NCBI RefSeq assembly: GCF_037042905.1
Contig: NC_087247.1
Location: 13,330,001 to 13,394,000 of the forward strand
Reading direction: 5' to 3'
Source: Lytechinus pictus
Lineage: Eukaryota
DNA length: 64,000 bases
The notes under the pieces are model-generated. The model did no database searches and was not told the DNA's origin. It was given only the letters and a program-made list of their open reading frames with translations. Positions within the stretch are counted from its first letter, which is position 1. The number at the start of each line of letters is the position of its first letter. Positions 648 through 56,600 of the stretch are shown here, piece after piece. Made by a program: the position numbers and the translations under genes.

Positions 648-2141
648 CTGGTGTATTCTGTGCTGTCGTATCCCACCCTGCTGACACCGTCGTTTCCAAG
701 CTGAACCAAGACAGGGGAAGCACTGCCATTGAGGCTGCAAAGAAACTCGGCATGGCTGGTAAGTTACATTTTACTCCTGTAGTTGGGATAGGAGTACTCA
801 ATCCCATTTTATTTTTTCAAGTCTCTTCTGTGAAATCCATGAAATTTGGAATATGGTATATGTTTTGAGAGAAACACACTTCCTTAGATCCGCTTCCAGG
901 GTGGCGTTCTTCATCTTGTACACACGCTACACACCCATCTCTCACTTGACATGGAGGCACCCTGGTTCTTTGGTGTCCTTTCTACTGCGCGTGAAGCATC
1001 CATCGTGATTCAAGTGAATCCCTTGCATGTTTCCTGTATCGGTGGATCATGGACACCTTAGTTCCATTGGTGCTTATGTGTCTTGTTATTGTATGGCTGT
1101 GTCAGTGTTTTGTGCAAGGTGTTGTAGCCACCCAGCAACGCTACAACGTTGTGTACCATTGGAAGTGCTTGAGTCATTGGTGTGTGAGATCGATATACCT
1201 CCAGTAGGAGCACTCTGTCAATCTTGTTTGATGCTAACAAGTTTGCTGCTCTTGATGGGGACATTATTCTATTCACTTTGGATGTATGATTATCTTATGA
1301 CAACTCAGGTCCAATTTGTAAAGAATTACCACTATTGATACTTTGGCACCATTATTGTAACTTCCAGAGAAACCTTGATTGTGATTGGCTCAAGGTCTGT
1401 TACCATGGTAGTTGCCATAATGGCAAAGTTACCTTAGTTTAACTCTATGAAATGGGCTCAGGTTCATTTGCTGGAGAAATGGTATAGTAAACACTTCTCT
1501 TCATCAATCTTCATATATACCAAGGACGGCCCGGCTGTGGAATTCACTTCCCGCCAACACATTCCCTTTAGCTCCCAACATGGACAGATTAAATAATAGT
1601 GTTAATACATATGTAATTAGCTTGATGTAAAACCTTGTACTTTTGATGTAATTATGGTTTATTAAGTGGCAGTCATGGGCCACTTTTCATCATTTTATGA
1701 TGGCAACATCAGGCCCAAAGAACATTAAAAAAAAAAAGTGGGAGCTATACTTTCAGGTATTTGCTTGTTATCAAGTTCTATGGCAATGACTAAGTACATT
1801 GGAATCCAGTTGTATGGACCTTATTCAACCAAATTCCTATTTTATGCTGATTTAATATTTCCTTGTAATCATCATGAAGTACTCACGGTCAAGTGTGTCA
1901 TTTTGAAACGAAGATTACTATGATCAGTGTATTGATAATGTGCAATTCAATTAATTTTTTTTATCTTATCTGTCTAGGTTTATGGAAGGGCTTGGCGCCA
2001 CGTATCATCATGATCGGTACCCTGACCGCCCTGCAGTGGTTCATCTACGACTCTGTCAAGGTCTTCTTCCGTATGCCCCGCCCACCCCCACCAGAGATGC
2101 CTGCTAGCCTCAAGGCCAAGCTTGATGCCAAGAATCAATAA
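648..2141 (+). CDS. SLC25A3: Mitochondrial phosphate carrier, last two coding exons (648-758, 1978-2141); the 5' part lies upstream of the window
   Basis: Spliced translation [37 protein letters not shown]|[54 protein letters not shown] is the characteristic PiC C-terminus. Splice sites are cag|648, 758|gtaag and tag|1978, and the phases match. Confidence 0.96.
873..1266 (+). ncRNA. SNORA53: Intronic box H/ACA snoRNA, probable SNORA53 orthologue (expanded)
   Basis: Lies in an SLC25A3 intron, the known host gene of vertebrate SNORA53. Blocks CTTCCTTAGATCC, CCAGCAAC and GTGCTTGAGTCATTGG..ATATACCT match the human RNA as I recall it. Basal stem ACACAC(874-879)/GTGTGT(1180-1185). The 3' hairpin (1198-1260) is followed by ACA(1261-1263)+3 nt. 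The H box is degenerate (AGATCG). Confidence 0.82.
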
Positions 2142-3386: not shown

Positions 3387-3863
3387 GGTAAATTGCCAAT
3401 TCGTCTACTGCCAACTTGTCCACTCGCCACATGATCTACTTTCATTTTGTCTAATGCCATTTCGTCCATTCATCACTACGTTTAATCACCAGTTTGTTTA
3501 TGACTATTCGTCTCATAACCAGTTGATCTAATATCCATTTTATTTTCTTCATTTCGTCCAATTAACAGTCTATTTAGAACAAATGGTACATGGTGGGTGT
3601 TTCATAAAGGTGTTCGTAAGTTAAGAACGACCGGTGAACCTTCCTTACGTGCTAAATAATCACCAATGAACATTTAATTTACCACAAGAAAGGATCACCA
3701 GTCGTTCTTAAAGTCGACTAAATGGCTATTGGACCAACTACTCTGGTTATTAACGAAATGGCAATTAGATCATATGGATAATGGACGAACTGGTGGTAGA
3801 CCAAATGATAGTAGACAAGTTGGTAATTGGACCAATTGGCATTAGACCAATTGAAAGTAAACC
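3387..3863. mobile_element. Miniature foldback-type DNA element (GGT...ACC termini, 8-bp TSD) with a nested MITE fragment at ~3591-3717
   Basis: GATTTATT is duplicated at 3379-3386 and 3864-3871. The arms are degenerate ~15-bp repeats in inverted orientation. Confidence 0.7.
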
Positions 3864-10310: not shown

Positions 10311-11284
10311 GGCTGACTCTGCTCTTCAACGTTGGTTGATAAGCGTGGGTGTTTATTTTTATATATCATGTAACTCACTAAGGTGACAGATGTGAGCGCG
10401 AGCTTATATTTTCAGATGTCATATTTTGATGCAACTTATGAGTGGTTTTCTTATTATTTCCATATAATCCCTGAAAACGGTAAAATGTGTAATACTGAAA
10501 ATGAAAAGATCTCCGGAATATGTCTCATCAAAGTGGCACAAGAGTGACTATATTTTTTGTGTACTATATATAGACAAAACAATAATATATAACGTACTGC
10601 CTACCGCCCTCTTTCAAATTTAGCACCTGTGTGATGTTTTCATCTGCATACATCTTTTTGAAAAGGATTCTATTATTACAGAGGACTGGGTGAATAGACA
10701 ACTTTTAGTGCTTATATCGATTCATTATCCTCTGACCACTGAAGCGAACAACTCAAACAGAGTAAGTGTACTGTTATCTCGGTTACCACGACGCAGTGAC
10801 GCACTGTAGCAAATATAGGCCTTCTCACTCTCTCGGACGTAAGGTGACCATCAGCTCTCAAGATTTATGTATATGAGGCCTATATGGATTAAGTAGTGGA
10901 ATAGACTGCAAAAAGGAGTAGTTGGAAAGGATTTGACAATGTAAGTATCTATAACATTTTTTATTATATGAAGTATATTAAATAATAATGTCCCCGATAG
11001 TTGTGTATTCAGAATGATGGACAGATGGAGAAATTGCCAACTCAGTAATATTTGATTTCTTGGATTTATATGCACCATGTCTGCCACAGATCATAGACCA
11101 AAAGTATTATTGATGGTAGCTAGTGGAAACCATGTTTAATCTTTCCAGTCATGAACAATTTCACAATATCTGAAATAGCCTACTAGAACTATGCTCCGTT
11201 TTCTTTTAAAATGTATTTTATGTTTTAATGGTATGCTTTTACCACTGGTGATACTTCTATTAAACGGCAATCAAACCTATTTGT

Positions 11285-11292
11285 AGACAGAT

Positions 11293-11323
<31 letters not shown>

Positions 11324-11485
11324 TAGATCAATAGAAAGAACGAAAGATAGATAGATCAATAGAAAGAACGAAAGATAGATAGAATGAAATATAGATAGAT
11401 AGATACATAGATAGATAGATACTTAGATAGATAGATCAATAGAAAGAACGAAAGAAAGATAGATAGATAGATCAATAGAAAGAAC

Positions 11486-11523
<38 letters not shown>

Positions 11524-11960
11524 ATGAAATATAGATAGATAGATATATACATAGATAGATATATAGATAGATAGATAGATAGATAGATACTTAGATAGAT
11601 AGATCAATAGAAAGAACGAAAGAAAGAAAGATAGATAGATCAATAGAAAGAACGAAAGATAGATAGATAGATAGAATGAAATATAGATAGATACATAGAT
11701 ACATAGATAGATATATATAGATAGATCGATTGATAGATATAGATACTTGGAAAGATAAATCAATCAAAAGAACGAAAGAAAGAAAGAAAGTTAGATAGAT
11801 CAATAGAAAGAACGATAGATAGATAGATAGAACGAAATATAGATAGATAGATAGATCAATAGAAAGAACCAAAGAAAGAAAGATAGATATATAGATAGAT
11901 AGATAGATAGATACTTAGATAGATAGATAGATTGATGGATGGATGGATAGAGATATATAG
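11285..11960. repeat. Compound (GATA)n/(GAAA)n microsatellite with higher-order units
   Basis: Recurring atag/agat units interleaved with caatagaaagaacgaaag. Confidence 0.92.
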
Positions 11961-12593
11961 TTTTTCTTTACTCTAACAATGGAATGTTATGAAAGACATG
12001 GATGTAATCATAATGTCAATGGACACGAGTCAATCGAAAGAATGAACCTATTTGTTTTTGGATGAAGAGAATTTCAGATTATCGAACCATATTTCATTTT
12101 CAGAATAAAACATTCCGATTAACGAAACTTCGGACTAATGAACCTTTCAAGACTTAATTCGGAATCGGTTTATGAAAGATAATTGTTTCCGTGTCCCATA
12201 TGCCTGTTCGTATAAATAATGGCATAGTATAATATTACACGACCCTGGGAAGCGGGGGGGTTATTGGGATGCTGGGGGCGCTTCTGAAGCACCCCAGGAT
12301 TTCTGGGATGCTGCGAATGACCTTCAATTTGGTGCGATGTCCCTTTTTCCTTGCCTTTCAAGTGTCCTTTCAAACCAGCACCCCCCGTTCGAAAAACGTT
12401 CCCACTTCCCAGGCCCCTAAACATATATAGGCCTATCCATGTTTATACTTTTTTTCGAAAACATATTACCTCTATGCCTAGCCTATATACTCCCGTCTAT
12501 GCTTGAGAATGTTCTTATTTTTTTCTAATTTGCTTTTCTTATGTTTCCTTTCATTTTTGTTAAGCTGGTTGTGATCATAGTGTGCTTTAAACA

Positions 12594-41600: not shown

Positions 41601-44600
41601 GAGGGTGTGGTCCCTACTAGGTCTTATGTCGGGCGTATGTCAATGTATCCTAATCGTTGCTCTCTAAAAAACATAATTTAGAAATTGGTCGTTTATAGTA
41701 TTTAGATTCTACCCTAACTTCAACTTGTCTAACGAGTCTGTGTCTGTCTGGGTAGGTCATAGTCACTCTACCTAGTGGCCAGTGCCCACGAGGAGCAGTG
41801 TCATCAGCTATGAGTACAAGGTCGTCAGTCTGGAAGTTTCTTTGTGGTTTAAGCCACCTTTGGCGTTCTTGGAGCAAGGGAAGGTATTCCTTTGTCCAAC
41901 GCCTCCAGAACTGTCCGGCCAGATATTGAGTTTGTCTCCATCTTCTTCGAGTATAACAATCACTCTTATCAAATACCCCTGGTGAAAGTGACTGATTTCT
42001 TCTCATGAGAAGAAGATGGTTCGGAGTTAGCGGTTCCTCATCTTTTGGATCCGCGCTTAAGGGTGTCAATGGCCTAGCATTGAGGATTGCTTCTACTTCA
42101 GACATGAGTGTGCTGAGAGTTTCGTCGGTTACAGTCTGAAGCTTGAGAAGATTTCCCAATATCTTCCTAACTGACCGGATTACTCTTTCCCAAACACCAC
42201 CCATGTGGCTCGCACCCGGAGGATTAAACGCCCATTCAATCCCTCGCTGAGTTAGAAAGCGACCCACCTTTGTTGAATTGAGCTCTGCTAGGCTCTGTTT
42301 TAGTTCTTTATGTCCTGCTCTGAAGTTTGTGCCATTGTCGCTAAAGATTTTCTCAGGTAGCCCCCTGCGATTTACAAATCTTCTAAGAGCGTTAATGAAT
42401 GAATCTGTATCCAAGGAGTTGGCTATCTCCAGATGTACAGCCCTAGTTGTCAAACAAGTGAATATACAGCCATACCTCTTTGGCTGGCTCCGTCCTTGCT
42501 TAACACTGAATGGCCCGAAGTAGTCGACTCCGGTGAAGGTAAATGGCGGCCTGCCAGGTGTCACTCTTTCTTTCGGCAAGTCAGCCATCATTTGCCTTCC
42601 TCTTGGTGCATTCCTCTTCCTACATTGAATGCATTTCCCTATGATCCGTCGAACAGTGGAACCCCCCTTCAGGATCCAATATTTCGACCTTAGTGCCGTC
42701 CATGTCATGCCTGCACCAGAGTGACCAACTTCATGATGGTGGTGCTCAATGAGCAGTCTGGTCACATGATGGTTGCTTGGCAATATCATGGGGTGTTTGG
42801 CATCAAAGTCAATAGGTGATCTGTCCAGTCTCCCTCCTACCCTCAGGACATCATCAACTAGGGTAGGGTTCAATTTCTTCATGGAGGACTGTTCAACCCT
42901 TGACTTCTTGTTCTTCTCAAACTCAGCTGGAAAGGCATCCTTCTGAATGTACTTCACTATTTCCAGCTCAGCTTCCGACAACTCGGAAGGTGTCAAATCT
43001 GTAGTCTTCTGAGATGTACCTTTCTTTGTGCGGGCTATCAAGTGTGCCTTGAAGCGAAGGATCCAAGCTACTCCTCTCTTTAATCTATTCCAGGATGAAT
43101 AGCGACTGATCAGATTACTAATGCTGTCTTGAGGCTTGATTGATATGGCATTAGTCCTCTTCATCTCAGGATCATCCTTGAGGTCCTGAGCGGGCAATAC
43201 TCTCTGGTCAGTCGGAGTTAGGAATGCTTCCGGCCAGTCTTCTTCTTGCTTCAGAAGGAAGTTTGGTCCTTGGATCCATCTTGATAGCTGTCCTGCATGC
43301 AATCCTCTTGAGCCATCATCTGCTGGATTGCTCTTGGTATCAACGTAGCGCCACTGTGAAGTGCCACTCTTTTCTTGAATGACAGCTACTCTGTTTGCCA
43401 CAAATGTACGGAATCTCCTACTGGTATTCCTTATGTACAGCAGCACTGAGGTAGAGTCAGTCCAGTATGTGACGCTCCTCACTGGTAGCCTGAGTTCTTC
43501 CATGATGGTTCGACCCAGCTTTACCGCTAGTACTGCTGCTGGCAGCTCCAATCTGGGAATTGTCATCTTCTTCAGAGGACAAAGTCTTGTCTTCCCCATC
43601 ACAAGTGCACTGTGGGTGCGACCAGAATCCTCTATCCGTAGATAGGCACATGCTGCATATGCTCTTTCTGACGCATCACAGAACACATGGAGATCATAGA
43701 CAGGGTCCTTGAAGTCAGATGGCTTGAAACATCTGGGGATGTGTACTGAGGTTAACTCTGGTAACTCAGCCAGCCAGGCTCGCCAGCGTTGCAAGTCCTG
43801 GTCCTTGATCTTCTCGTCCCAGCCAAGACCTTGGGCGCAAAGATCCTGCAAAAGAAGCTTTGCATTTACTGTGAAAGGTGCCACAAATCCAAGTGGATCA
43901 TACAAGGAGCTTGTGGCGGACAGTATACCCCTTCTTGTTGCTGGTACGTCCTTGGGAGAAACCTTGAAGCTAAACATGTCAGAGTCCATGTTCCATAAGA
44001 CTCCAAGTGTTCTCTCTATTGGAAGATGATCCAAATCTAGATCAACTACCGATGCAGCCCTTTCTGTAAGAGGGACTGTTTCCAACACTTCCTTGTCATT
44101 GCTGACCCACTTTGTTAGTCTGAATCCTCCTTTTCTTAGAAGGCTGCATAACTGAGGAATGAGCCTTATCGCTTCCTCTGTAGAGCGAACAGACTTCAGG
44201 CAGTCATCGACATAGAAATTGTCCTTGACTATCTGACAAACTTCTGGCTCAAAGTCCTGCCTGTTGTCTTCCTCAGTCCTTTGGAGTGCAAAGCCTGCAC
44301 AGCTTGGAGACGAAGTCGCTCCAAACAGATGGACTTGCATCTTGTACGCCTTAGGCGTCGTGTCCGTGTTGCCGTTCTCCCACCACAAGAATCTGAGCGC
44401 ATCAGTGTGGGCGGGTGTGACCCTCACTTGGTGGAACATACCCTCCACATCTGCCACCAGTGCTATCTCCTCTTGTCTGAAGCGAAGAAGCACACCAACA
44501 AGCTTATTTGTGTAATCCGGTCCACTCAATAACTGGCTGTTAAGGGAGATTCCTTGGTATTTGGCAGCACAGTCAAATACTACACGCACCTTTTCCGGCT

Positions 44601-47600
44601 TGAAGGGATGAGTCACTGGGTGGTGAGGTAGATACCAGATAGAGCCCTCCTCTTGAGGGTCCTCGTCCACCTCCCTTGCAAACCCTTCGACAAATAATTT
44701 GTCATAGTTTCTGTGTACTTCTGGTGAAGGCTGTCATCCTTCTCCAGTCTTCTCTTTAGAGATTGTAAACGTGACTCTGCTATCTTGTGGTTGTTTGGTA
44801 GAGACGGAGGGAATTGACGCCAAGGTAAACCCATCTCATAATGGCCATCCATAAGACGGATTGTGTCTTCCATCATGGCACGAGCCTTCCTGTCTTCTAC
44901 CGAGTCACCTAATCTTTCACTCTCATCACCAGGAGCATAGTCCAGTTTCCAGAATCTCTGGACTTGCTCTTGCAAATGGTCATCCATTGAGATGTTGTTC
45001 ACCTCAAATGCTCCTTTCCTTCTGCGTCCGGTGGGGCCCATGACTGTCCATCCCAGTGGAGAACGGATAGCATATGGTTCTTTCTTCTTTCCCCTCCTTT
45101 CTTCCTGGACCCAGAAGGCCTCTGGGGTGTCACTCCCTATGAGCAAGGTGATATCCTTCTTGGCAGCTGTTGGAAGCTCTATTCCCTTCAGATGGGACCA
45201 TCTATCTACGTCCTGTTGCCTTGGTATACTTCTATGGGTTGTTGGTAGTGATTCTACCGTCCACACCCTGGGCATATCAATTACATCCCTGTCCTTAATT
45301 CCTTGAATGGAGAAACTAACCTCCTGTCCTCCCCTTTGGGTATTAGTGTTGTTCACCGTGGTCAGTCGGAAGTTTGTCTCCTTACCTTGGATGCCGAGGT
45401 CATCTGCAAGACGCTGTTCGCAGAGGGAAACATCGCTGCCATGGTCCAGCAAAGCCCATGTTGTCACCTCCCTGCCATTGCCTCTAACCTTGACAGGTAA
45501 AACTCGGAGACAAACCTCTTTCTGACCACCAACAGCATTAGTGTCGGCCTGGTTATCTAAGTCAGATCCTTGCCCGGCCCCAGTTTGCTTACCTGTTTCT
45601 TGCCCTTTATCTTTGCCCTTGGTGTACCACTCCATGTGAAGAAGGGTGTGGTGTCTTTTCTTGCACCCATCCTTGCTGCACTTAGGGGTAGCTGTACAGC
45701 CCTTTGCCATGTGCGACCCTTTGAGGCAATTGAAACATAGCCCCTTAGACTTGACAAAGGCAAACCTTTCATCTACTGACTGACCTTTAAATTTGCGGCA
45801 CTTATCAAGCTCATGCTTCTCTGAGCAGCATGGGCATGAGCTCGATTCCTTAGGTTTCTCAGACTTGCTTGTTGTAGTATTAAAGGTCGAAACCTTTGGC
45901 CTAGGCTTCCCCGCAGATGCCTTCTTGTCTTGCACGGCTGGACGCCCTACGCTCTTACCGAACACATTACTCGCCACCTTAGCAGACTCTTCGATGAAGT
46001 CTGTCAGATGGGAGAAGTTGGGCATCACTGATTGCTCCATCAGTGAATGTGCTCGGCTGGCCCACTTGGATTGAATGTGGACTGGGAGAAGATGTTGAAT
46101 CTTCAGTAGGGTATCCGTTGTACTCATATCAGCCGAGTACCCCATCTGAGAAGTTGTCATCTGACACCTCCTCATGTCTCTGGCTAGATCCCACAGACCT
46201 TGGCTGTCCGTGGCCCTGAGTGGTGATCTATTGATGACCTTCTCCATGTGAGCTCTAGCCACTATGTAGTTCCGTCCGAACTGGTCCTGTAGTATTATCC
46301 TAGCTCGGGAATAACCTGTATCGGGATCTAATAATACACAATTTTCTATGGCCTCTCTGGCCTTGTCTGAGGTAAACTGAATTAAGTAAGACAATTTTAA
46401 CCTACTGTCATGAATTCTGTCAGCAATATTAACTTCAAAACTATTCACAAAATTCCAATAATCAATCGGATTGCCTGAGAAAGTTGGCATGTCTGGCTTT
46501 GGCAAACTTAGAGCCATTGCCATCATATTATGATTATACATGTTATTAACTGGGGTCTGAAATGGATTGGGTATGAAGGGTTTCTGTTCTTGTGCTTGGC
46601 TATTAACTTGGTGATTACCATTGTATCCCCTGCTTAACCCTACTCCTTCATTACCCGGCTTATGAATTGTTGTAGTACCTTCACCTACTACACCAGTACT
46701 TACATGTTCATTACCTTTAACATATACATTATCCTTTCGAACATTTGGTACATTACCCTGATGATTTGATTCTCCTTGGGTGGAGAACCACCTTTCTGTA
46801 ATTTGTGCATTGTCCAAGTCCTTGTTAGGTAAGGGCGGAAATCCTGCTTCTGCCCTTTCTTCATTTACTTGTTCTTGCCACATGGTGGCTTCAACCTTGG
46901 CATTTTCCTTGTCATGGTCGATCTTGAGAAGTTCTATTCTTTCATTCAGTTCAAATTGTTCCTGTTGTAATTTAAACTGTTCTCGTCTTAGTCTTTGTTC
47001 CTGTAAGAACTGCTCCCTTTTCTTATTCACCAGCTCCTCCTTCACCCTCGCTGCTCTTAGTTTCACGCTTGATGTATCGCTTACACAAGACACTCTGGAC
47101 ATGGCGCTCCCCCGAGATGTGGTAGACTTTACATCATCCTCGTCGTCTCCAGCTCCAGGTCCAACTCCAGCAAGGGCTTCTGAATTTGGTTTATTTGAGG
47201 GATCCATAATGCAGTTGCGAACTGTCGTGTAGCTGCCTTTCTTAAACTACACGTGGAAATTCTTAATTGCTTAGTTCGAACACGCTAATTGAAGACTCAA
47301 ACAACGGCTTTACAGTTACTTGTCTGTTTATTCCTTCTTCAACTTCTTCCGTAATAATGACGACACATAAATCAACAACTTGACATCAAATACGGCCTTG
47401 TAATGAAGTTTCTAGGTCGACATAACCAACGACCAGCGAAGAAACCTTTAACCATGCAGCATCAACTGTCAACAACCAGTACTTCAACAATTGCACGACG
47501 ATTGAGCGATTGAGCGGTAATTGAGCGATTGAGCGGTAATTGAGCGGTTCGCTGAATAAACAAATAAACATATAAACACAGTGTTAATATTCATTTGCCA

Positions 47601-50600
47601 ACAGTAACATAATTCAAACATGACTGAATAACTTGTAAATAACTTCTTATATACCCACAGGGAATAAGTCTCAATGATACTAATGCAATATACAACGGTC
47701 AAGGATATTAACGTGATTAAAGGAAACCTCAATAATTGATCATATTATTTGAGTTGAATAATTGTTTGGTAAACAATAATAAATTGGTAATCAATAACTG
47801 TAATCAATATCAGATTAAATCTGAATATGTGCAATATAAACTCATTATCTTGTTGGCCTAATAATTGTAATTATAGTTAATAAACATCTTCATCCCTTTA
47901 ATGCCCTTATTATCTTAAAGCAAATAATACTGAAATTAATATAGGCAAACAGAAAATATATAACAGACACTTACTAATAACTGGTTAAATACTAATAAAC
48001 CATGATGAATCATAATATATGTGATTCCTAAACTAAACCAAACAGTACTTAGATATGTTTATAATAACATAATATAGTAATAGAGTAATAACCCAATGAT
48101 CTCATGCCTAAGCTAGGAGACCCTACCACCCTACACAATATATAACACCAGTTGACTACTTACAACTAAATGAAGTGAGCATTATATCACTCTCAGAAAA
48201 TAAATGCAATATAATCTTCTTGTGTAATCAAATTAAGAATAAGTTCATGTGAACATAATAGCACACAATAATACGAAGCATAATTATCTCTTTATAACAT
48301 ATTAATAGTAATTAAATCTGACTGAACACCAATCACCTTCTATTGGTTTGTGTGTACATGTATACATTATGAAGTAATGCTCGATAGAGAGCAAAATGCC
48401 AAATTCCATCACTCAAATTTGAGCCAAAATTACATAAATGTGAATGACTTATGAAACCCAGTATTATGGAATAATTGACAGCACATATATAAACTTTGAA
48501 AATAATGCAATTTAAACTTACCAACTGTTTGCAATCCTGGAGAATTTCACAATTTATAGGAATAAATACAATTTCTTGACTATCTTCTTCTGAATCTTTG
48601 CGACTTCTGAATCTTACTTTCTTTGTTCTATACTTTGGGTGATGCTTCACCCATATGACTCATCTTCTCCTGGACTTCTTGGAATCAAGGAGCACAATAA
48701 GCAATGCGCTGTGTACAATCTGGCATTGACATTTTTTACTTTCTTTTTCCACTGACTCTGTATACAAGATACATGCATGTAAACAGTACATAATAATGGC
48801 AAATATACCAAATTATATTCATGCCGCTACACTCCTTTTTTTGCTAAAAGGTCTGCCACATCGTTCCCGTGAATACCACAATGGGATGGTATCCATTCAA
48901 AATTGACATAAATATCTGATAATTGTAAAACTTTGATTTTATACAAGATATCAACAATAAGATTGTTTTGTATACGATTGCTTTCAAGTGCTTGAAGAGC
49001 AGACAACGAATCTGTAAAAATTACCACGGATATACCTCTGTTATCTCCTAGCCAATCAAGTGCCATTACTATTGCTGTTAATTCGGCTCTCATTATACTT
49101 ACAGAATTTAATCTATAGAATCTTTTAATATCCAGTTCTGGTATATAAAAAGCAGAGCCGGTTCTCTTGTCTTCTTGTTTTGATCCATCAGTGTAGATAT
49201 TTAAGTAACCTTTCCATCTTGTATGTATCCTTTCTGAGACACAGTTTTTCATATCTTGTACTAAGTTACGTTGTTTATTGATAATCTTATGGATATAGTA
49301 AGATATACTAGGTATTTCATATGACCAAAAAGGTTCTCGTAATATTCTTTGGCTTAGTTGTTCAATTTGGATCTCTTCATTTGGCTTACATGCTCTGACT
49401 ACAAAGGGTCCACGACCTGATTTCCAAGTAAATTGATCAATATACCAGGAAGGTTCAATAATTTCTAAAGTAGGATGATGACTATCTCTGTTTGTTAAAA
49501 GATAAAACATGTATTTGTCAACAGACAGTTCTCTTCTTAGTTGTAAAGGTCTTTCACCACATTCTACCTGTAGTGCTTCAAGGGCAGGGTTATATACTGC
49601 ACCAGTTATTATTTTCAGTGACTGATATTGGATTGAATCTAATTCTTGTTTTAGCGAAAGGCTAGCCGAGTCGTATAACTCACATCCGTAGTCTAATATG
49701 GATCTAATAAGACCTTTGTATATTATATAAAGAATCGTTTTATTATTTCCCCAACTTGTTCCTGCTATACACCGTAACAAATTGATTCTTTTTGAACATT
49801 TGAGTTTTATATAATCGATGTGCTTTTTCCAGGTGAGTTTCACATCAAACCAAATACCCAGAAACTTATATTCTTTGTATTGTGGTATAGAGTTATCTTT
49901 AACCTTAATATTTACCTCTATATGCTGCCTATTGGTAAAAATCATAACAGCAGACTTTTGAGGAGAAATAATCATACTCCAGGTTGAGCACCACTGTTCA
50001 ATTTCTTTTATAGCTTTCTGCATTTTCTTTTGTAAAAAGTCAAGATTTCTGCCTGAGCACCATACGGCAATATCATCGGCATACATAGAGATTTTAACAG
50101 ATTTTTTCATCAGTTTTAGATCATTTAACATTAAATTGAACAAAATTGGACTAATAACACTACCTTGGGGCGTTCCATTTTCCAGAACAAATTGTGAAGA
50201 TAACTGGCCATTAATTTTTACCTTGCAATATCGATCTTGTAAAAATGAATTAATCCACTGTAACATTTTTCCTTTTATACCAGCTTGATGACATTTAAAT
50301 ACTAATCCCTTTCTCCATAAAAGGTAGTATGCCTTTTCAAGGTCAATGAAAATAACTAGGACATACTCCTTGTTAGCTAATCCTTTCTGTATGTCCGTTT
50401 CTAATCTAAGGAGTTGATCTAAAGAACTTCTATTTTTTCTAAATCCTGCCTGTGTTGGTGTCAGGATACTGCATCGCTCCATGAACCATACAAGTCTATT
50501 TTTAACCATTCTTTCCATCAGTTTGGAGAAAGTTGATGTCAAGGAAATAGGTCGATATGAAGAAGGGTTTGTTGGGTCTTTACCTGGTTTAAGTACAGGG

Positions 50601-53600
50601 ATCTGGGTAGAATAATGCCAATCTGAGGGTAGAATTGAGGAATTCCAAATATTGTTTACTAAAACTAATATGAACTGAAGAGCTATTTTCGGTAGGTGTT
50701 GTATCATAATTGATTTGATACCATCTGTTCCTGCTGCAGAATTTTTCATTTCTTTAACAGCGCTTGTTAATTCATAAATTCATCATCAAGAGGTGATTCA
50801 GAGGAGCAGCTTTCTTTGATCGTATTTTGTATTAAATTTTCAAATGAATTTCTTCTAATAATCTCGTCATTGTCTAATTCTGCCTTTTCTTGAGCATTAG
50901 CTACTGGTGTATTGTTTTCTGTTAATAAATTGGGAAATATATGTTTTGAGACAGAACCATTTTGTAGTCCTTTTACCATTTCCCATACTTTTCCTAAGTT
51001 GAATGTTCTCCTTAAAGACTGACAGTAATTTAACCAGTATTCCTTTTGTGTTCGTCTCTTTATTTTTGGGGCATATGCTTTCTTTTTCCTATACATTTCC
51101 AAGTCCTCCTTTCTAAAATGTCTATTTAATCGATTTCTATATTTATTTATTTCTTTAATTGCTTCTTGTATTCTAGTGTCCACCAAGGAACTGGGTTTTT
51201 GGCTTTTCGATTTCGGCCTGCTTTGCGAAGGGTTTCTTCTGCCACTTCGTTAATTATCTGCAAAATCAAATTGTATTTATCTTGAATATTCAGATCGTGT
51301 GAAAATTGTAATATCTTTATTTTACTAAATTTATGTTTCATTTTTTCCCGATATATTTCCCAGTTTACATGCTTGAAGGACCAATTCTTTTCATGATGAT
51401 TGATATTATGATCTACATATTCTATTTCGTGCAGTGAGCACTTGATGACATTGTGATCACTCCCAAAATTTCCTAGCACGTTCCATTTTAGTTTGCTGGC
51501 AATTTCCTTCGAAGCAATTGTTAAGTCTAGGCAAGACCTTGTCCCTGTATGGATGTCCATTCTTGTAAATGTCCCGTCATTCAATACTACTAAATCATGT
51601 TTTGTTATAAAGTTTTCAACTAATGTCCCATTACTATCTCGCTTTATGCTACCCCACAGAGGGTTGTGTGAATTGAAATCACCTGTAATTATTATGTTTT
51701 TTGAACAATTTTCAATCAAATCTTCTAAATCGCGCAATTCTATCTTTTGACAGGGATTATAATAATTGATTAATGAAATGACCTTTTCATAAGTGAAAAT
51801 GTCAATTCTTTGATATTCCTTGATTTGAGGGAAATTAACTTCTTTGAAAGTAACTGTTTTATGCACATATATTGCAATTCCTCCTCTTCCTCCTTGGCCT
51901 CTATTTTTTTATTACGGGGATGAAATCTGGAATTGCTAATATATTGAAATCAGTGAACCACGTTTCTTGTAAACATATCAAGGCAGGGAGTGAGTTTAAT
52001 TCTACACTTTCTATTAGCTCTTTGTAAAAGTCTGGACCGTGGGCATTCATGCTTTGGGCATTCCATTGTAAAATATTGAAAGTCCGAGCGTTGATAGTCT
52101 TTGAGCTGTCTTTATTACTGAAGACGATCGTGGATCATCTCTGGAGACACCTCGTTGATGTCTAAGCACCTCGCTTGGCTGCATCAACTACTAATCTAAT
52201 TCTGTTTGAATGTGAAGTTTCTTTGTCAAGGTTATTTACAATAAAAGTGATGAAAGCCAAAAAGTCGACTCTAGCATTTTCTGTGGATGCGGGAATTACA
52301 GGCCCAGATTCTTCTGCTTCATTAGGCTTTTGATTAGAAGTAAATTCTTGCGCATCTGTCTGAACAGACTTTTCCGCCGTTTCTGTTTGTGTGGACATGG
52401 TCGCCGTTTTTATGGTCGACCTCTTTACCGTAATTGGTATTTGTTCTACGTCAGCTTCCGAAATATTCGGTTGATCAGGGATTTTCTTTCTTTTGAGGGG
52501 TTTGATTATATTCTTGTTTGATGAATCACGATCTTTTGAATGATTTTCTTCTCTTTTTTCTTGATGGTATATTTTTGTTGCTTGAGCATAAGTTAAATTA
52601 TTTTGCAAGCTGACATGTTGAATATTTTTTGCTTCCTTATAATAGGTACATCCTTGATAGGCCGCTGAATGATTAAGGTTACATCTCAAGCATTTTGGGT
52701 GATCTTTATTGGGGCACATTTCAAAAGTGTGGGCCTCACCACATCTTAAATGACCCTTGCAATTCTTTTGGATGTGCCCAAATTGCTGGCATTTGTGGCA
52801 TCTTGTTACAGTAGGGACAAACTCATCAACTACATATTTTTGGTATAGAAAGGAGACATGGTGTGGAAGATTTGGCCCTTTGAATACTAGTAGAACAGAA
52901 GGGGTTGGTGATAATTCACCGTTTATTCTTTTATTGAATCTCTTTACATACGTCACACCTTGTTCTTTCAGGAGCTCATTTAGTTCTTCCTCCGTGATTA
53001 GGGTATCTACTTTATGAATAACACCGCGGATTTGAGTTATGGGCAGATATTGTGCAACCTTTACAGGGGTGTGAATTAGTTCAGTCATTTCTAAAATCTT
53101 TTTCATCTGTGTTTCATCAATACAAGTAACTTTCAGGCTTCCCTTTTCTTTCGTAATTTTACTCACCTCTCCATACTTCGAGGTAATTTCTTTAATGAGT
53201 CTTGCTGGGCTTATTTTGCTTATGCATGATTTCTCACCAACATCTCTTATTTCTACTATCATAGATTTTTTCTCATTTCTGATATTCTGTTTCTTACCTT
53301 TTTTACGATTTGAACACGACCCTTCTTTGTTTTCGAAACTTCCTTTCCTAACTCTTTTGTCATCTTCATTTATAGTTCTTGTACTTGCCTTTCTCTTTTT
53401 TCTCTCCACTTTTCGCCACTCCATTTCACTCTCAACTTCTGTAGAACTCTCTCTATCATTTGTTTTATTGAGATGAGATTGGAATATACCTTGTTTTCTA
53501 TTACTGCTCGGGGTATTCGTTACCTTACCAATTGCGGCTTGGTAATACGCTTCTTCTCCAGAAGAAATATCTGTCTCTTCCGTTTCCATTACCTCTGTTT

Positions 53601-56600
53601 GGATAGTTTGAATATTATTAGAAGTACCGTTAACATTGGGTTTTGTTAGTATGCTGGTTAGTTTACTGTAAATGTGCTTTTGAATTTCGCTGACAGGCTT
53701 ACCAATCCGCTGTCCGAATCGAAAGAGTTGGTTCATAAGCTTCTCAGACGACTTTCGCTTTTGCTGAACTAAGATTCGTATATTCCAAATTCATATATAT
53801 CCACAGATAATATAGCTCAGATCAGTGCAGCTTTGTTGACTCCAGCCTAGCACCGTTGACATTCAGCCAAGTTGTGAGTTCTGTATACAGCTATATACAG
53901 TAACTAGGCCGAGGCTTAACTTGTCTTAGACTAGATCTAACGGGCCTACTCCATACTCCCTGTGTCATGTGTGTAGCAAAATAAGGTTGGCAATGTTTGG
54001 TTTATTTTTTCTTGTTCTTGGGAACCAATGCTTGATTGTTTTACACTGTCAGTTTCTATATAACTTGGCTCTTAGACTTAGACTTAACTTAAGAAAATTT
54101 AATTCTTTTAATTATTTTTTATGAAAAATATAGATTAACTTTAATCTTTATACACTAACAGCATGAACAGTTAGACAGTGTTGTTTTTTACTGGAAAAAA
54201 AAGAGAACGTGATAAAATGGTTGCACTGCACCCTGATTTACTGGAAAATTATCCTGTCTAAGTTCGGTGATTAGGGTAAGATATCTTCATTAAAAATAAT
54301 GTGGTTGTGTATAGTCTTATTAGTTATAGACTGTATTGGAAAATGTATGTAATCAAGTGAGTTTGCGCTTTTGCGTAGGTATTTTGAGTTAAGATTGAAA
54401 TCTCATTTCCCCAGGTACTAGATTTAAAAAAATCTTAAAAATCTTGGCAAGTGTGCGTCCGGATATTAGAGAGATCCGGATAAGAGTAGGCCGGATAAAA
54501 GAGGTCGGACCCCGGGGGGGGGCACTCGACCAAAAAAAAGTAGTAGGTATGTGCCGCGGGCGAGACAAAAAATGGGAGCCTTGGAGCGGGCTTATCGTAA
54601 AAAGGAGGGTCCTCGGAACGGGCTTCGGAACTGCAAATGTTTGTGAAAACGGGGGTCCTTGGAACGGGTCGCCTGCGTGCGAGTGCGTATGCATCCCTAT
54701 GGAACGTGCGTGCAGCTAGCCCGGCGGCACGACTACTGGGCGCGCTAGCGCAGAGCCGGTGGTCGGACAGCGCTCTGTGGCCGCTTTTCACCAAAATTGT
54801 GACCGGAACAGCGTAACGGAAAATATGCGAAGCTTTGGAGCGGATTTCTTCTTTTTTTCTCGATAAGAAGAAAATGCTATGCTTTGGAGCGGCTTTCTTT
54901 GTTCTTTTGCTCAATAAGACAAAAATGCTATGCCTTGGAACGGAAATTTGAGTGTAAAAATGGGGGTCCCCTCCGCGGCACATAACCACTATGCATTATA
55001 TACTGAGTGCCCCCCCCCCCCCCCCCCCCCCCGGGGGTCGGACTGTATGTGCGACTTTTCCCCAAGTATTCACCAATTGGTGATATTTAAATGTCCATTT
55101 TGCTTCTCGTCGACAAACATGGAGCTAACCAGGCAGGAGGCTCCTATAACATTAACGTTAGAGAGTAAAAATTAGGTTTTCACTACTGTGTGCTTAGATA
55201 TCTACCCTTCACGGAGCCAGGGATTGTACCCCTATCCTGTGCGCATATTGAGGTCAAAATTGAAATTTTCTCCACCCACCCCCCCCCAGATTTCTACTTT
55301 CCCTGTTAAAGATCTAGCCCTAATCATGTAAATGGGTTAGAACTTAATTTCCGACATTTATACAGTATTGATTTCATTTTTAGACAAATAGTCTATTCAT
55401 TAAAAAACCAAGAAAAACATTATGAGTAGACATGAAAAAACTGGCCGTTGTTTACGTGGCCATCTTATTCTCCTTGTTAGAAGCTTAGCTACAAGATGCA
55501 TATAGAGGGCGGCAGATATCTGCTACTGCAACAACAAAAAAAGGTGTTTGGGTGCAGCCCCCCTGGATCCACCAGAGCATCCACCCCCTATTGCAGTAAT
55601 TGTTCAGGGAATGATTTGAAAAGCAAAATGGAGAAATAAAGAACAGGCCACCATACTTCTCACGGTCACATTATATCCAGGAGAAGAATAAATGTGAACA
55701 TTTTAGTTAGTCAATTGATTCATTTCAAATGATGAGCAACTGTGCAGCCCACAAAGTGGAGAGATCCTTTGCTGTATGGACATTTTAAGTTAGCATTTTT
55801 TTTTTTTTGTTGAGCCAGGTAGATCAAAAACAGGTATTTTTTTAATCGGTAATGATTTATTTTACGATTATGAATAATTCTTTAAATTACTACCGGTAGT
55901 TCATTACAGGTGCAAGACTGCACTATTGGCAGTGCCCATTGCCATTATTGTTACGTGATGAAGCTTAGTGTTGTTAATGTTAAATCAAAAAGTAAAATAT
56001 TCTCAACACATTAAAGAGAGTGATTGAGTTTCTTATCACACATGTTTATCATAGACTCCCACCTGCATAATGCAGGCCTTGTCTCCATTGGGTTAAAATC
56101 ATTGAGAAGAGATTAAATGATATTTTCACCAATTGATATAGATATGACCTTAATTAGGATACTTGTTTTTGTTCGTTTGATCTTTCTGACATGATGATAC
56201 CAAAATACCCAATCATAGATGATGAAAAGTGACCTACTTTTACCAACTTACAATCCATTAAAAAATAAAAAGAGAAGTTCTTACAACAAGCTACATAAAT
56301 ATGAATTAAGACAATTCTAAATCTGTCCTAAAGGAAAATACTAGTACATGTATTTTGACAGGTCACAGGAAGTGAGTCTAACAGCTGAGCCATCCTTGGT
56401 ATGTACAAAACTAGTGTGTTTCAGGCAGCCCCTTCCTGGAGCTCCTTGGATAGGCTGCAAAGTTATTTAAAGTTTTCCAGAAACAGAACTGGTTACTTAA
56501 TGAAGGCTATAATTTCTCTCATTTGTTTTTCTTAACAGGCAATGCAGGAATCAGTGAAGAACATCAGCTTTTGCTGAAGACATTCCCCAATCCCAAAGGA

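Follow-up and report, generated by a model that had tools for sequence, protein, structure and literature searches.

SNORA53 (ACA53; Rfam family RF00563) is an H/ACA small nucleolar RNA (snoRNA) that vertebrates carry in SLC25A3, the gene of the mitochondrial phosphate carrier; in human it resides in the 'fifth intron', between E5 and E6 (PMC8763049). A review of 2015 still gave no target for it. The target was then provided by Jady et al. 2022 (PMC8763049), where knockout, rescue and mutagenesis demonstrated that the pocket of the human 5' hairpin directs two pseudouridines (Psi) of 28S ribosomal RNA (rRNA), Psi3747 and Psi3749. Upstream, 10-CCUUAGA-17 pairs with 28S UCUUAAGG (3749-3756) with U3752 bulged; downstream, G136-U140 pairs with 28S A3742-C3746; the bulged 131-CUU-133 is required for the second configuration, and the H box must stand 14 nucleotides (nt) from U3747 (PMC8763049). 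In addition, both pseudouridines stay intact when the distal part of the 5' hairpin is deleted, and the 3' hairpin contains no conserved antisense sequence (PMC8763049). Here, we describe the sea urchin counterpart of this RNA, found in a stretch of 64,000 nt of Lytechinus pictus (the window; all coordinates refer to it unless another locus is named). A sequence-only reading of the window had proposed an expanded, orphan SNORA53-like RNA at 873-1266, on the sense strand of an SLC25A3 intron.

With good confidence, 873-1266 (+) can be regarded as a SNORA53 orthologue that would be transcribed, processed and used as a dual guide as set out below. The proposal of a SNORA53 homologue in an invertebrate SLC25A3 intron, in sense orientation and much longer (~394 nt) than the ~250-nt vertebrate RNA, thus holds. 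Its orphan status does not: the target is now established, so that this framing is obsolete, and the accompanying prediction of a real, conserved target is answered by 28S Psi3747/Psi3749 (PMC8763049).

Guide core, fold and family membership

The guide core of the window RNA reproduces the human one residue by residue (Table 1). The stretch G1173-G1186 makes up 14 nt before the hexamer at 1187, which equals the count of human G136-A149 before the H box at 150-155; the spacing considered was 14 nt from the H box for one target uridine and 16 nt for the second. Hence, the antisense elements with their bulge and the 14-nt spacing are both present. The pocket strands CTTCCTTAGATCC (879-891) and GTGCTTGAGTCATTGG (1165-1180) each occur once in the 64-kb window. 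The sequence-only reading had matched them to the human sequence, and they do agree with the SNORA53 consensus of Rfam as well as with the residues named in the human functional study; no copy examined deviates from the 10-mer CCUUAGAUCC or the 12-mer GCUUGAGUCAUU. Since the core is identical to the human guide residues, the known mechanism can be transferred by homology, and by this analogy the feature almost certainly has the function known for SNORA53.

Along these lines, the snoRNA would be transcribed within the SLC25A3 precursor messenger RNA (pre-mRNA); after splicing, exonucleases would trim the last intron back to a particle containing dyskerin, Nop10, Nhp2 and Gar1, and so free the RNA. 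The 5' pocket would then base-pair with the universally conserved AUGAC-U-C-U-CUUAAGG of large-subunit rRNA, and two alternative pairings would allow two neighbouring uridines, the equivalents of human 28S U3747 and U3749, to be converted to pseudouridine. This rRNA stretch is identical in yeast and human and is expected in sea urchin. The 3' hairpin and the ACA box would serve assembly and stability only. The extra ~150 nt lie in the 5' hairpin, where they lengthen the distal main arm. Such an arm would behave like an expansion segment, its sequence drifting while a self-contained sense-strand helix is kept and the pocket is left undisturbed.

The predicted fold has the layout of the H/ACA class, namely a 5' hairpin (874-1185), a hinge (1186-1197), a 3' hairpin (1198-1260) and a tail with the ACA (1261-1263), which lies 3 nt from the predicted 3' end. 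The unconstrained minimum free energy (MFE) structure of 870-1270 has -160.1 kcal/mol (z = -7.3 against dinucleotide shuffles) and yields the basal stem, the upper stem and the 3' hairpin; the opposite strand has -115.8 kcal/mol (z = -2.7). The branching of the 5' hairpin into basal stem, pocket, upper stem, main arm and side hairpin follows from this structure and from the folds of 10 orthologues. The pairs named in the sequence-only reading all lie where it had placed them, that is ACACAC (874-879) with GTGTGT (1180-1185) in the basal stem, CGCTTCC (891-897) with GGAAGTG (1161-1167) in the upper stem, AGGAGCA (1206-1212) with TGCTCTT (1247-1253) and CTTGTT (1223-1228) with AACAAG (1236-1241) in the 3' hairpin, together with AGATCG (1187-1192) and the ACA plus 3 nt. 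The description of a GC-rich, self-complementary island in an AT-rich intron is likewise borne out by the folding score and by a GC content of 47% for 873-1266 vs 34.5% for the remainder of the intron.

Comparison across species supports the same pairs. The upper stem, complete with 8-9 pairs, displays double compensatory changes across 11 invertebrate copies and with respect to the vertebrate consensus (T-A/C-G, C-G/T-A, and A-T to G-C or C-G), and the window keeps all pairs. The basal stem is near-invariant across these 11 copies, and its few changes are compensated. A compensatory change also occurs in the side hairpin of the nemertean Tubulanus (AUAAC/GUUAU), and the 3' hairpin of the window can be aligned with that of the sea urchin Diadema, compensatory changes included; it shows no obvious pseudouridylation pocket.

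Family membership was also assessed with profiles made from other copies. An independent profile hidden Markov model (HMM), built on 5' strands from 15 SNORA53 copies with the window excluded, gives a single match in the 64-kb window, at 873-899 (E = 3e-7, 26.8 bits), and a profile of the 3' strand and hinge from copies of other species has its unique match at 1158-1203 (E = 1e-15). Moreover, 873-897 agrees with the RF00563 consensus at 19 of 26 positions, including the 13-nt run CUUCCUUAGAUCC, and pairs perfectly with 1160-1185.

Table 1. Features of the SLC25A3 3' region and of the predicted SNORA53 RNA, in window coordinates
Feature	Positions	Strand	Basis
SLC25A3 penultimate coding exon	648..758	+	translation; tblastn, homologous exon in 12 other animal loci
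SLC25A3 last intron, snoRNA host	759..1977	+	GT 759-760, AG 1976-1977
Whole predicted SNORA53-orthologous H/ACA RNA, ~394 nt	873..1266	+	ends predicted from 5'-hairpin base and ACA + 3 nt
Basal (proximal) stem, 5' strand	874..880	+	pairs with 1179-1185; MFE fold; 7/7 standard pairs
Upstream antisense element CCUUAGA	882..888	+	identical to human 10-CCUUAGA-17; invariant in ~25 copies
Upper (distal) stem, 5' strand	891..898	+	pairs with 1160-1167; all pairs standard
Expanded main arm of 5' hairpin, 235-nt single long imperfect helix	899..1133	+	folding alone
Pocket-like decoy CCTTAGTTCC... inside arm	1052..1082	+	Rfam alignment, many non-pair marks
Short side hairpin GCAACG...CGUUGU at three-way junction	1135..1152	+	fold; in all orthologues
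Upper (distal) stem, 3' strand	1160..1167	+	cross-species covariation
3' pocket strand: CUU bulge 1168-1170, antisense GUCAU 1173-1177	1168..1177	+	identical to human; invariant in all copies
Basal stem, 3' strand	1179..1185	+	MFE fold; same stem in all orthologues
H-box position, hexamer AGAUCG	1187..1192	+	ANANNA with G for A at position 6
3' hairpin, ~62 nt	1198..1260	+	fold -23.1 kcal/mol
ACA box	1261..1263	+	predicted mature 3' end 3 nt later, 1266
SLC25A3 last coding exon, including stop codon 2139-2141	1978..2141	+	sequence read, homology

Host gene and orthologues

The two exons that flank the host intron encode the C-terminus of the mitochondrial phosphate carrier, 90 residues with 95.6% protein identity to Diadema antillarum, the diagnostic tail included; identity to the sea cucumber is 90.9%, and the starfish, brittle star, crinoid and acorn worm also rank below Diadema. 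The snoRNA lies between these last two coding exons, on the sense strand of the gene. SLC25A3 proteins of other animals were gathered from the last-exon peptide and their genomic loci were then scanned with Rfam, all SNORA53 matches being on the sense strand (Table 2). SNORA53 is found in the same last intron, between the homologues of 650-758 and 1980-2138, in nine other invertebrate loci. In Diadema, the 5' strand (model positions 2-25) is identical to window 874-897. The nemertean Tubulanus polymorphus carries two copies in tandem (L012:3362-3564 and L012:3653-3856), both in the last SLC25A3 intron.

Table 2. Rfam scores and H-box hexamers of SNORA53 in other invertebrate SLC25A3 loci
Lineage	Rfam score (bits)	Hexamer
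Diadema (urchin)	78.2 (copy B)	ACAUCA
Apostichopus (sea cucumber)	76.6	ACAGAA
Acanthaster (starfish)	62.0	AGAGUA
Amphiura (brittle star)	63.6	AGAGAA
Anneissia (crinoid)	82.4	ACAUUG, deviant at position 6 as in window
Saccoglossus (acorn worm)	89.4	AUAUAA
Liolophura (chiton)	64.6	ACAUAA
Tubulanus (nemertean), two tandem copies	88.7 and 87.1	AGAGAA

The occupation of the same intron in echinoderms, a hemichordate, a mollusc and a nemertean indicates that the association of SNORA53 with SLC25A3 predates the protostome/deuterostome split. In the bird Lophotis, SNORA53 (L013:8153-8392, 200.5 bits) lies two introns further upstream, in the third-from-last intron, which is consistent with the 'fifth intron' given for human. 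The host gene is therefore conserved from lophotrochozoans to vertebrates and the host intron is not; SNORA53 seems to have moved between introns of one host gene. Accordingly, the sequence-only reading was right that the host is the same gene as in vertebrates, but the intron differs. Its view that host gene and guide sequences are conserved across deuterostomes is too narrow, given the chiton and the nemertean, and too broad, given that neither Rfam (E up to 0.1) nor a motif search detected SNORA53 in the amphioxus SLC25A3 locus. The jellyfish SLC25A3 locus gave the same negative result with both searches, and CCTTAGATTG in its last intron was rejected as a SNORA53 strand for lack of a partner strand. 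Our literature searches found no papers on SNORA53 in invertebrates, and for snoRNA host genes of echinoderms they gave nothing of relevance.

Copies outside SLC25A3 also exist. When metagenome contigs were searched for GTGCTTGAGTCATTGGTGTG, a 20-mer, 13 of them (L014-L026) contained it, and the seven that were scanned with Rfam all hold SNORA53-family copies, most of them at 52-71 bits, with lower scores for the L014 copy and the truncated one of L015. No SLC25A3 exon was found near the copies in any of the 13 contigs. L014 (WLWD01000387.1) bears two tandem copies at 10915-12535 (-) with a 5'-hairpin interior of ~310 nt, of which Rfam scored one at 39.7 bits and missed the other; no SLC25A3 exon lies within 14 kb, and the open reading frames near these copies gave no informative Pfam match for a host gene.

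Further observations concern the gene and its surroundings. In the host intron, 3' of the snoRNA, 1514-1701 has a diverged inverted copy 55 kb away at 56212-56405 (-), with 72-79% identity; this stretch and its copy are probably a dispersed repeat. In one Diadema copy only, the last SLC25A3 intron contains two tRNA-like matches (L004:9067-9134 and L004:9394-9461; 39 and 50 bits), in a part whose alignment to the other copy is poor; these may be tRNA-derived repeats. Two amphioxus intervals, L009:4844-4984 and L009:6202-6360, both match the last SLC25A3 exon and may represent a duplicated or alternative terminal exon. Elsewhere in the window, two long open reading frames of 1006 and 864 amino acids, at 41650-47207 (-) and 48827-50749 (-), encode Pao/BEL peptidase, reverse transcriptase, integrase zinc-binding and DUF5641 domains, and a separate 640-amino-acid frame encodes reverse transcriptase and RNase H; all of these are retrotransposon insertions downstream of SLC25A3. 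Upstream of SLC25A3, a gene with transketolase pyrimidine-binding and C-terminal domains stands head-to-head with it in five lineages: starfish (L001:1-968), crinoid (L003:1-1129), acorn worm (L008:1-839), amphioxus (L009:1-492) and nemertean (L012:1-397). Its products, of ~254-368 residues, resemble the 2-oxoacid dehydrogenase E1 beta subunit. The two genes are a conserved pair, and the window begins too far 3' to show it.

The enlarged main arm and alternative explanations

With 394 nt, the window copy is the longest seen, vs 203-347 nt in the SLC25A3-hosted invertebrate orthologues. Its main arm measures 235 nt, that of Diadema 179-180 nt and that of the sea cucumber Apostichopus 158 nt, vs 20-64 nt in the other lineages measured (Amphiura excluded, its measurement being unreliable). 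When folded alone (898-1133), the window arm reaches -109.8 kcal/mol (z = -10.3); the Diadema and Apostichopus arms, each a single helix, give z = -7.8 and -5.4. The window helix contains 10 G.U pairs and no A.C mismatch, and its antisense strand folds 32 kcal/mol worse; on the sense strand, each of the four long arms has 8-12 G.U pairs and lacks A.C mismatches, and the antisense strands fold 13-32 kcal/mol worse. This asymmetry argues against a decaying DNA palindrome or inverted-repeat element. Past the first six base pairs, the window and Diadema arms cannot be aligned, the arm base GGGUGG/CCACCC being common to both. The genome comparison among echinoids covers Diadema, the two closest other proteins (P0275 and P0278) being encoded on intron-less transcript contigs.

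The two Diadema copies allow the evolution of core and arm to be followed separately. Their 157-nt core has no differences, the arm is 94.4% identical and the flanking intron 91-94.5% identical. An arm as similar as its flanking intron points to sequence drift at about the intron rate, while a core that is unchanged next to a diverging intron points to purifying selection in the lineage. Our conclusion is that the arm has been lengthened in the manner of an expansion segment, with self-folding as the only filter; it would be tolerated because it occupies a position that the human deletions mark as dispensable. The maintenance of a sense-strand helix in three echinozoan lineages despite complete sequence turnover might instead be read as the sign of a selected, echinoderm-specific module, acting as a protein docking platform, a pre-ribosome scaffold or a small-RNA source, with the H-box change reflecting an altered particle assembly. 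We consider this unlikely. Other echinoderms lengthen the RNA elsewhere: the starfish (L001:7857-8203) and brittle star (L002:17524-17782) RNAs, of ~347 and 259 nt, have short 5' main arms and 3' hairpins of ~190 and 147 nt, and their GGGGACA ends lie well downstream of the shortened Rfam matches. Enlargement is thus a general trait of SNORA53 in echinoderms, and the distal arm concerned varies.

Some results speak against 873-1266 being a functional SNORA53. An Rfam scan of the whole window at the gathering threshold reports no SNORA53, and a permissive scan of 750-1400 scores RF00563 at 37.7 bits (E = 3.6e-7), which is 0.3 bits lower than the curated gathering cut-off of 38 bits. The hexamer at the H-box position, correctly described as non-canonical in the sequence-only reading, agrees with ANANNA at 5 of 6 positions, having G at position 6 where the canonical Diadema box has A, and the hinge offers no alternative ANANNA. 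As AGAUCG departs from ANANNA, canonical anchoring of the 5' hairpin by dyskerin is not assured, and it is mainly for this reason that confidence in function is not higher; a literature search for H boxes that work with a G in the sixth position found none. The match to the target in the urchin would rest on the universal conservation of the rRNA stretch. Finally, some of the differences between Diadema copies A and B disrupt predicted arm pairs, which suggests that constraint on individual arm pairs is weak. As to the H box, it is canonical in seven lineages, and only the crinoid orthologue shares the position-6 deviation; the AUAUACC sequence 3' of it in the hinge, conserved from nemertean to vertebrate, is intact in the window.

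An alternative is an RNA of ordinary size, ~214 nt (1052-1265), preceded at 873-1051 by unrelated structured intron. In its favour, the only Rfam alignment obtained covers 1052-1265 and takes the imperfect CUUAGUUCC at 1052 as the 5' pocket strand. However, the 5' strands of the basal and upper stems are deleted or unpaired in this alignment, its guide is mismatched to the 10-mer invariant in every other copy, the 5'-strand profile that matches 873-899 alone leaves 1052 unreported even at E = 100, and only 874-898 pairs with 1160-1185. The same mis-registration affects other long copies, namely Diadema copy A (337 nt, 30.2 bits), whose near-identical companion copy B (336 nt) is correctly aligned at 78.2 bits, and the ~430-nt copies of L014. 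The maximum hit length of the Rfam search appears to be near 335 nt; with a main arm of 235 nt to bridge, the model would then fail to reach the true 5' strand and put it on a chance decoy at 1052, with the motif series CCTTAGTTCC...TGCTT...GTGTC (1052-1082). An origin of this decoy as an internal partial duplicate of the core was rejected, as the similarity is not significant (p ~0.04 and 0.33), and it is taken as chance. An ordinary-size RNA is therefore extremely improbable. The covariance-model check foreseen by the sequence-only reading, which did return SNORA53 but narrowly under the cut-off, probably fell short for a technical and not a biological cause.

The deviant H box, together with the greatest length of any copy found and the existence of SNORA53-family copies outside SLC25A3 on eukaryotic metagenome contigs, could also suit a decaying, non-functional copy with a damaged H box and a bloated arm, the guide being supplied by another locus. 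We judge this improbable: the guide nucleotides, both stems, the side hairpin, the AUAUACC hinge, the base of the 3' hairpin and the ACA are all intact, the ancestral host intron is occupied, the Diadema core shows 0 differences in 157 nt vs 5-9% in the flanking intron, and the crinoid copy with the same kind of H-box deviation is otherwise strong (82 bits). A foreign insertion in place of gradual elongation, be it a mobile element that forms a hairpin or a small-RNA gene nested in the snoRNA, would fit a near-continuous 235-nt hairpin that resembles inverted-repeat elements and cannot be aligned with the Diadema arm. Nevertheless, no second copy of any part of 873-1266 is present in the 64-kb window, no Rfam family, microRNAs included, matches the arm, and its base is common with Diadema; moreover, 10 G.U pairs vs 0 A.C mismatches and a 32 kcal/mol sense advantage are unlike a decaying palindrome, and other echinoderms enlarge distal arms as well (the 5' main arm in Apostichopus, the 3' hairpin in Acanthaster and Amphiura). 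This origin of the arm is very improbable, and an elongated SNORA53 orthologue is the reading retained.

Significance and comparison with known systems

All in all, the window SNORA53 is real, very old and probably ordinary in function. It brings no new functional biology, the target having been known since 2022. What is new relative to the literature found is the enlarged echinoderm form missed by the standard model, the position-6 deviation of the H box, and the presence of SNORA53 in SLC25A3 of protostomes as well, the intron being a different one in those vertebrates that were examined. Part of this phylogenetic breadth may already be known to specialists, as a supplementary figure of Jady et al. 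shows SNORA53 from distant species. Because enlarged copies are mis-registered or under-scored (the window, Diadema copy A and L014), Snoscan-style echinoderm inventories will under-report SNORA53. The locus also provides a clean case for studying both the retention of an intronic snoRNA by its host and its moves from one intron to another, and a natural counterpart to the human deletions, in which the guide core is frozen while distal arms range from ~20 to 235 nt.

In comparison with vertebrate SNORA53 (RF00563; PMC8763049), the window RNA has identical CCUUAGA, GUCAU, CUU bulge and 14-nt H-box spacing, and the same branched 5' hairpin, AUAUACC hinge, 3' hairpin without conserved pocket, SLC25A3 host and sense orientation. 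It differs in total length (394 nt vs ~240-250 nt), in the main arm (235 nt vs ~70 nt) and 3' hairpin (~62 nt vs ~90 nt), in the H box (AGAUCG vs AGAGAA in human and AGAuaA in the Rfam consensus), in its position in the last intron vs the third-from-last in bird and the 'fifth' in human, and in scoring below the Rfam cut-off. SNORA57, SCARNA8 and SCARNA1 (PMC8763049) likewise use one pocket for two nearby uridines through alternative pairings, as proposed for the window RNA; unlike it, they are of unrelated sequence, carry the dual pocket in their 3' hairpin and have other targets. The invertebrate orthologues share with the window the last SLC25A3 intron, the invariant pocket core and the architecture, with Diadema and Apostichopus also long-armed, whereas they are shorter, enlarge the 3' hairpin in starfish and brittle star, and have a canonical H box except in the crinoid.

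Two further systems offer a comparison in yeast. There, 25S Psi2264 and Psi2266, which correspond to the two human sites and belong to the same conserved stretch of rRNA, are guided by the snoRNAs snR3 and snR84; unlike SNORA53, these are two separate single-site guides from independent genes. For the enlarged arm, a precedent is the pair formed by yeast snR30 and vertebrate U17/SNORA73. These belong to a different family, and their function is in rRNA processing, not modification; they differ several-fold in length through the enlargement of non-essential hairpins around a fixed functional core.

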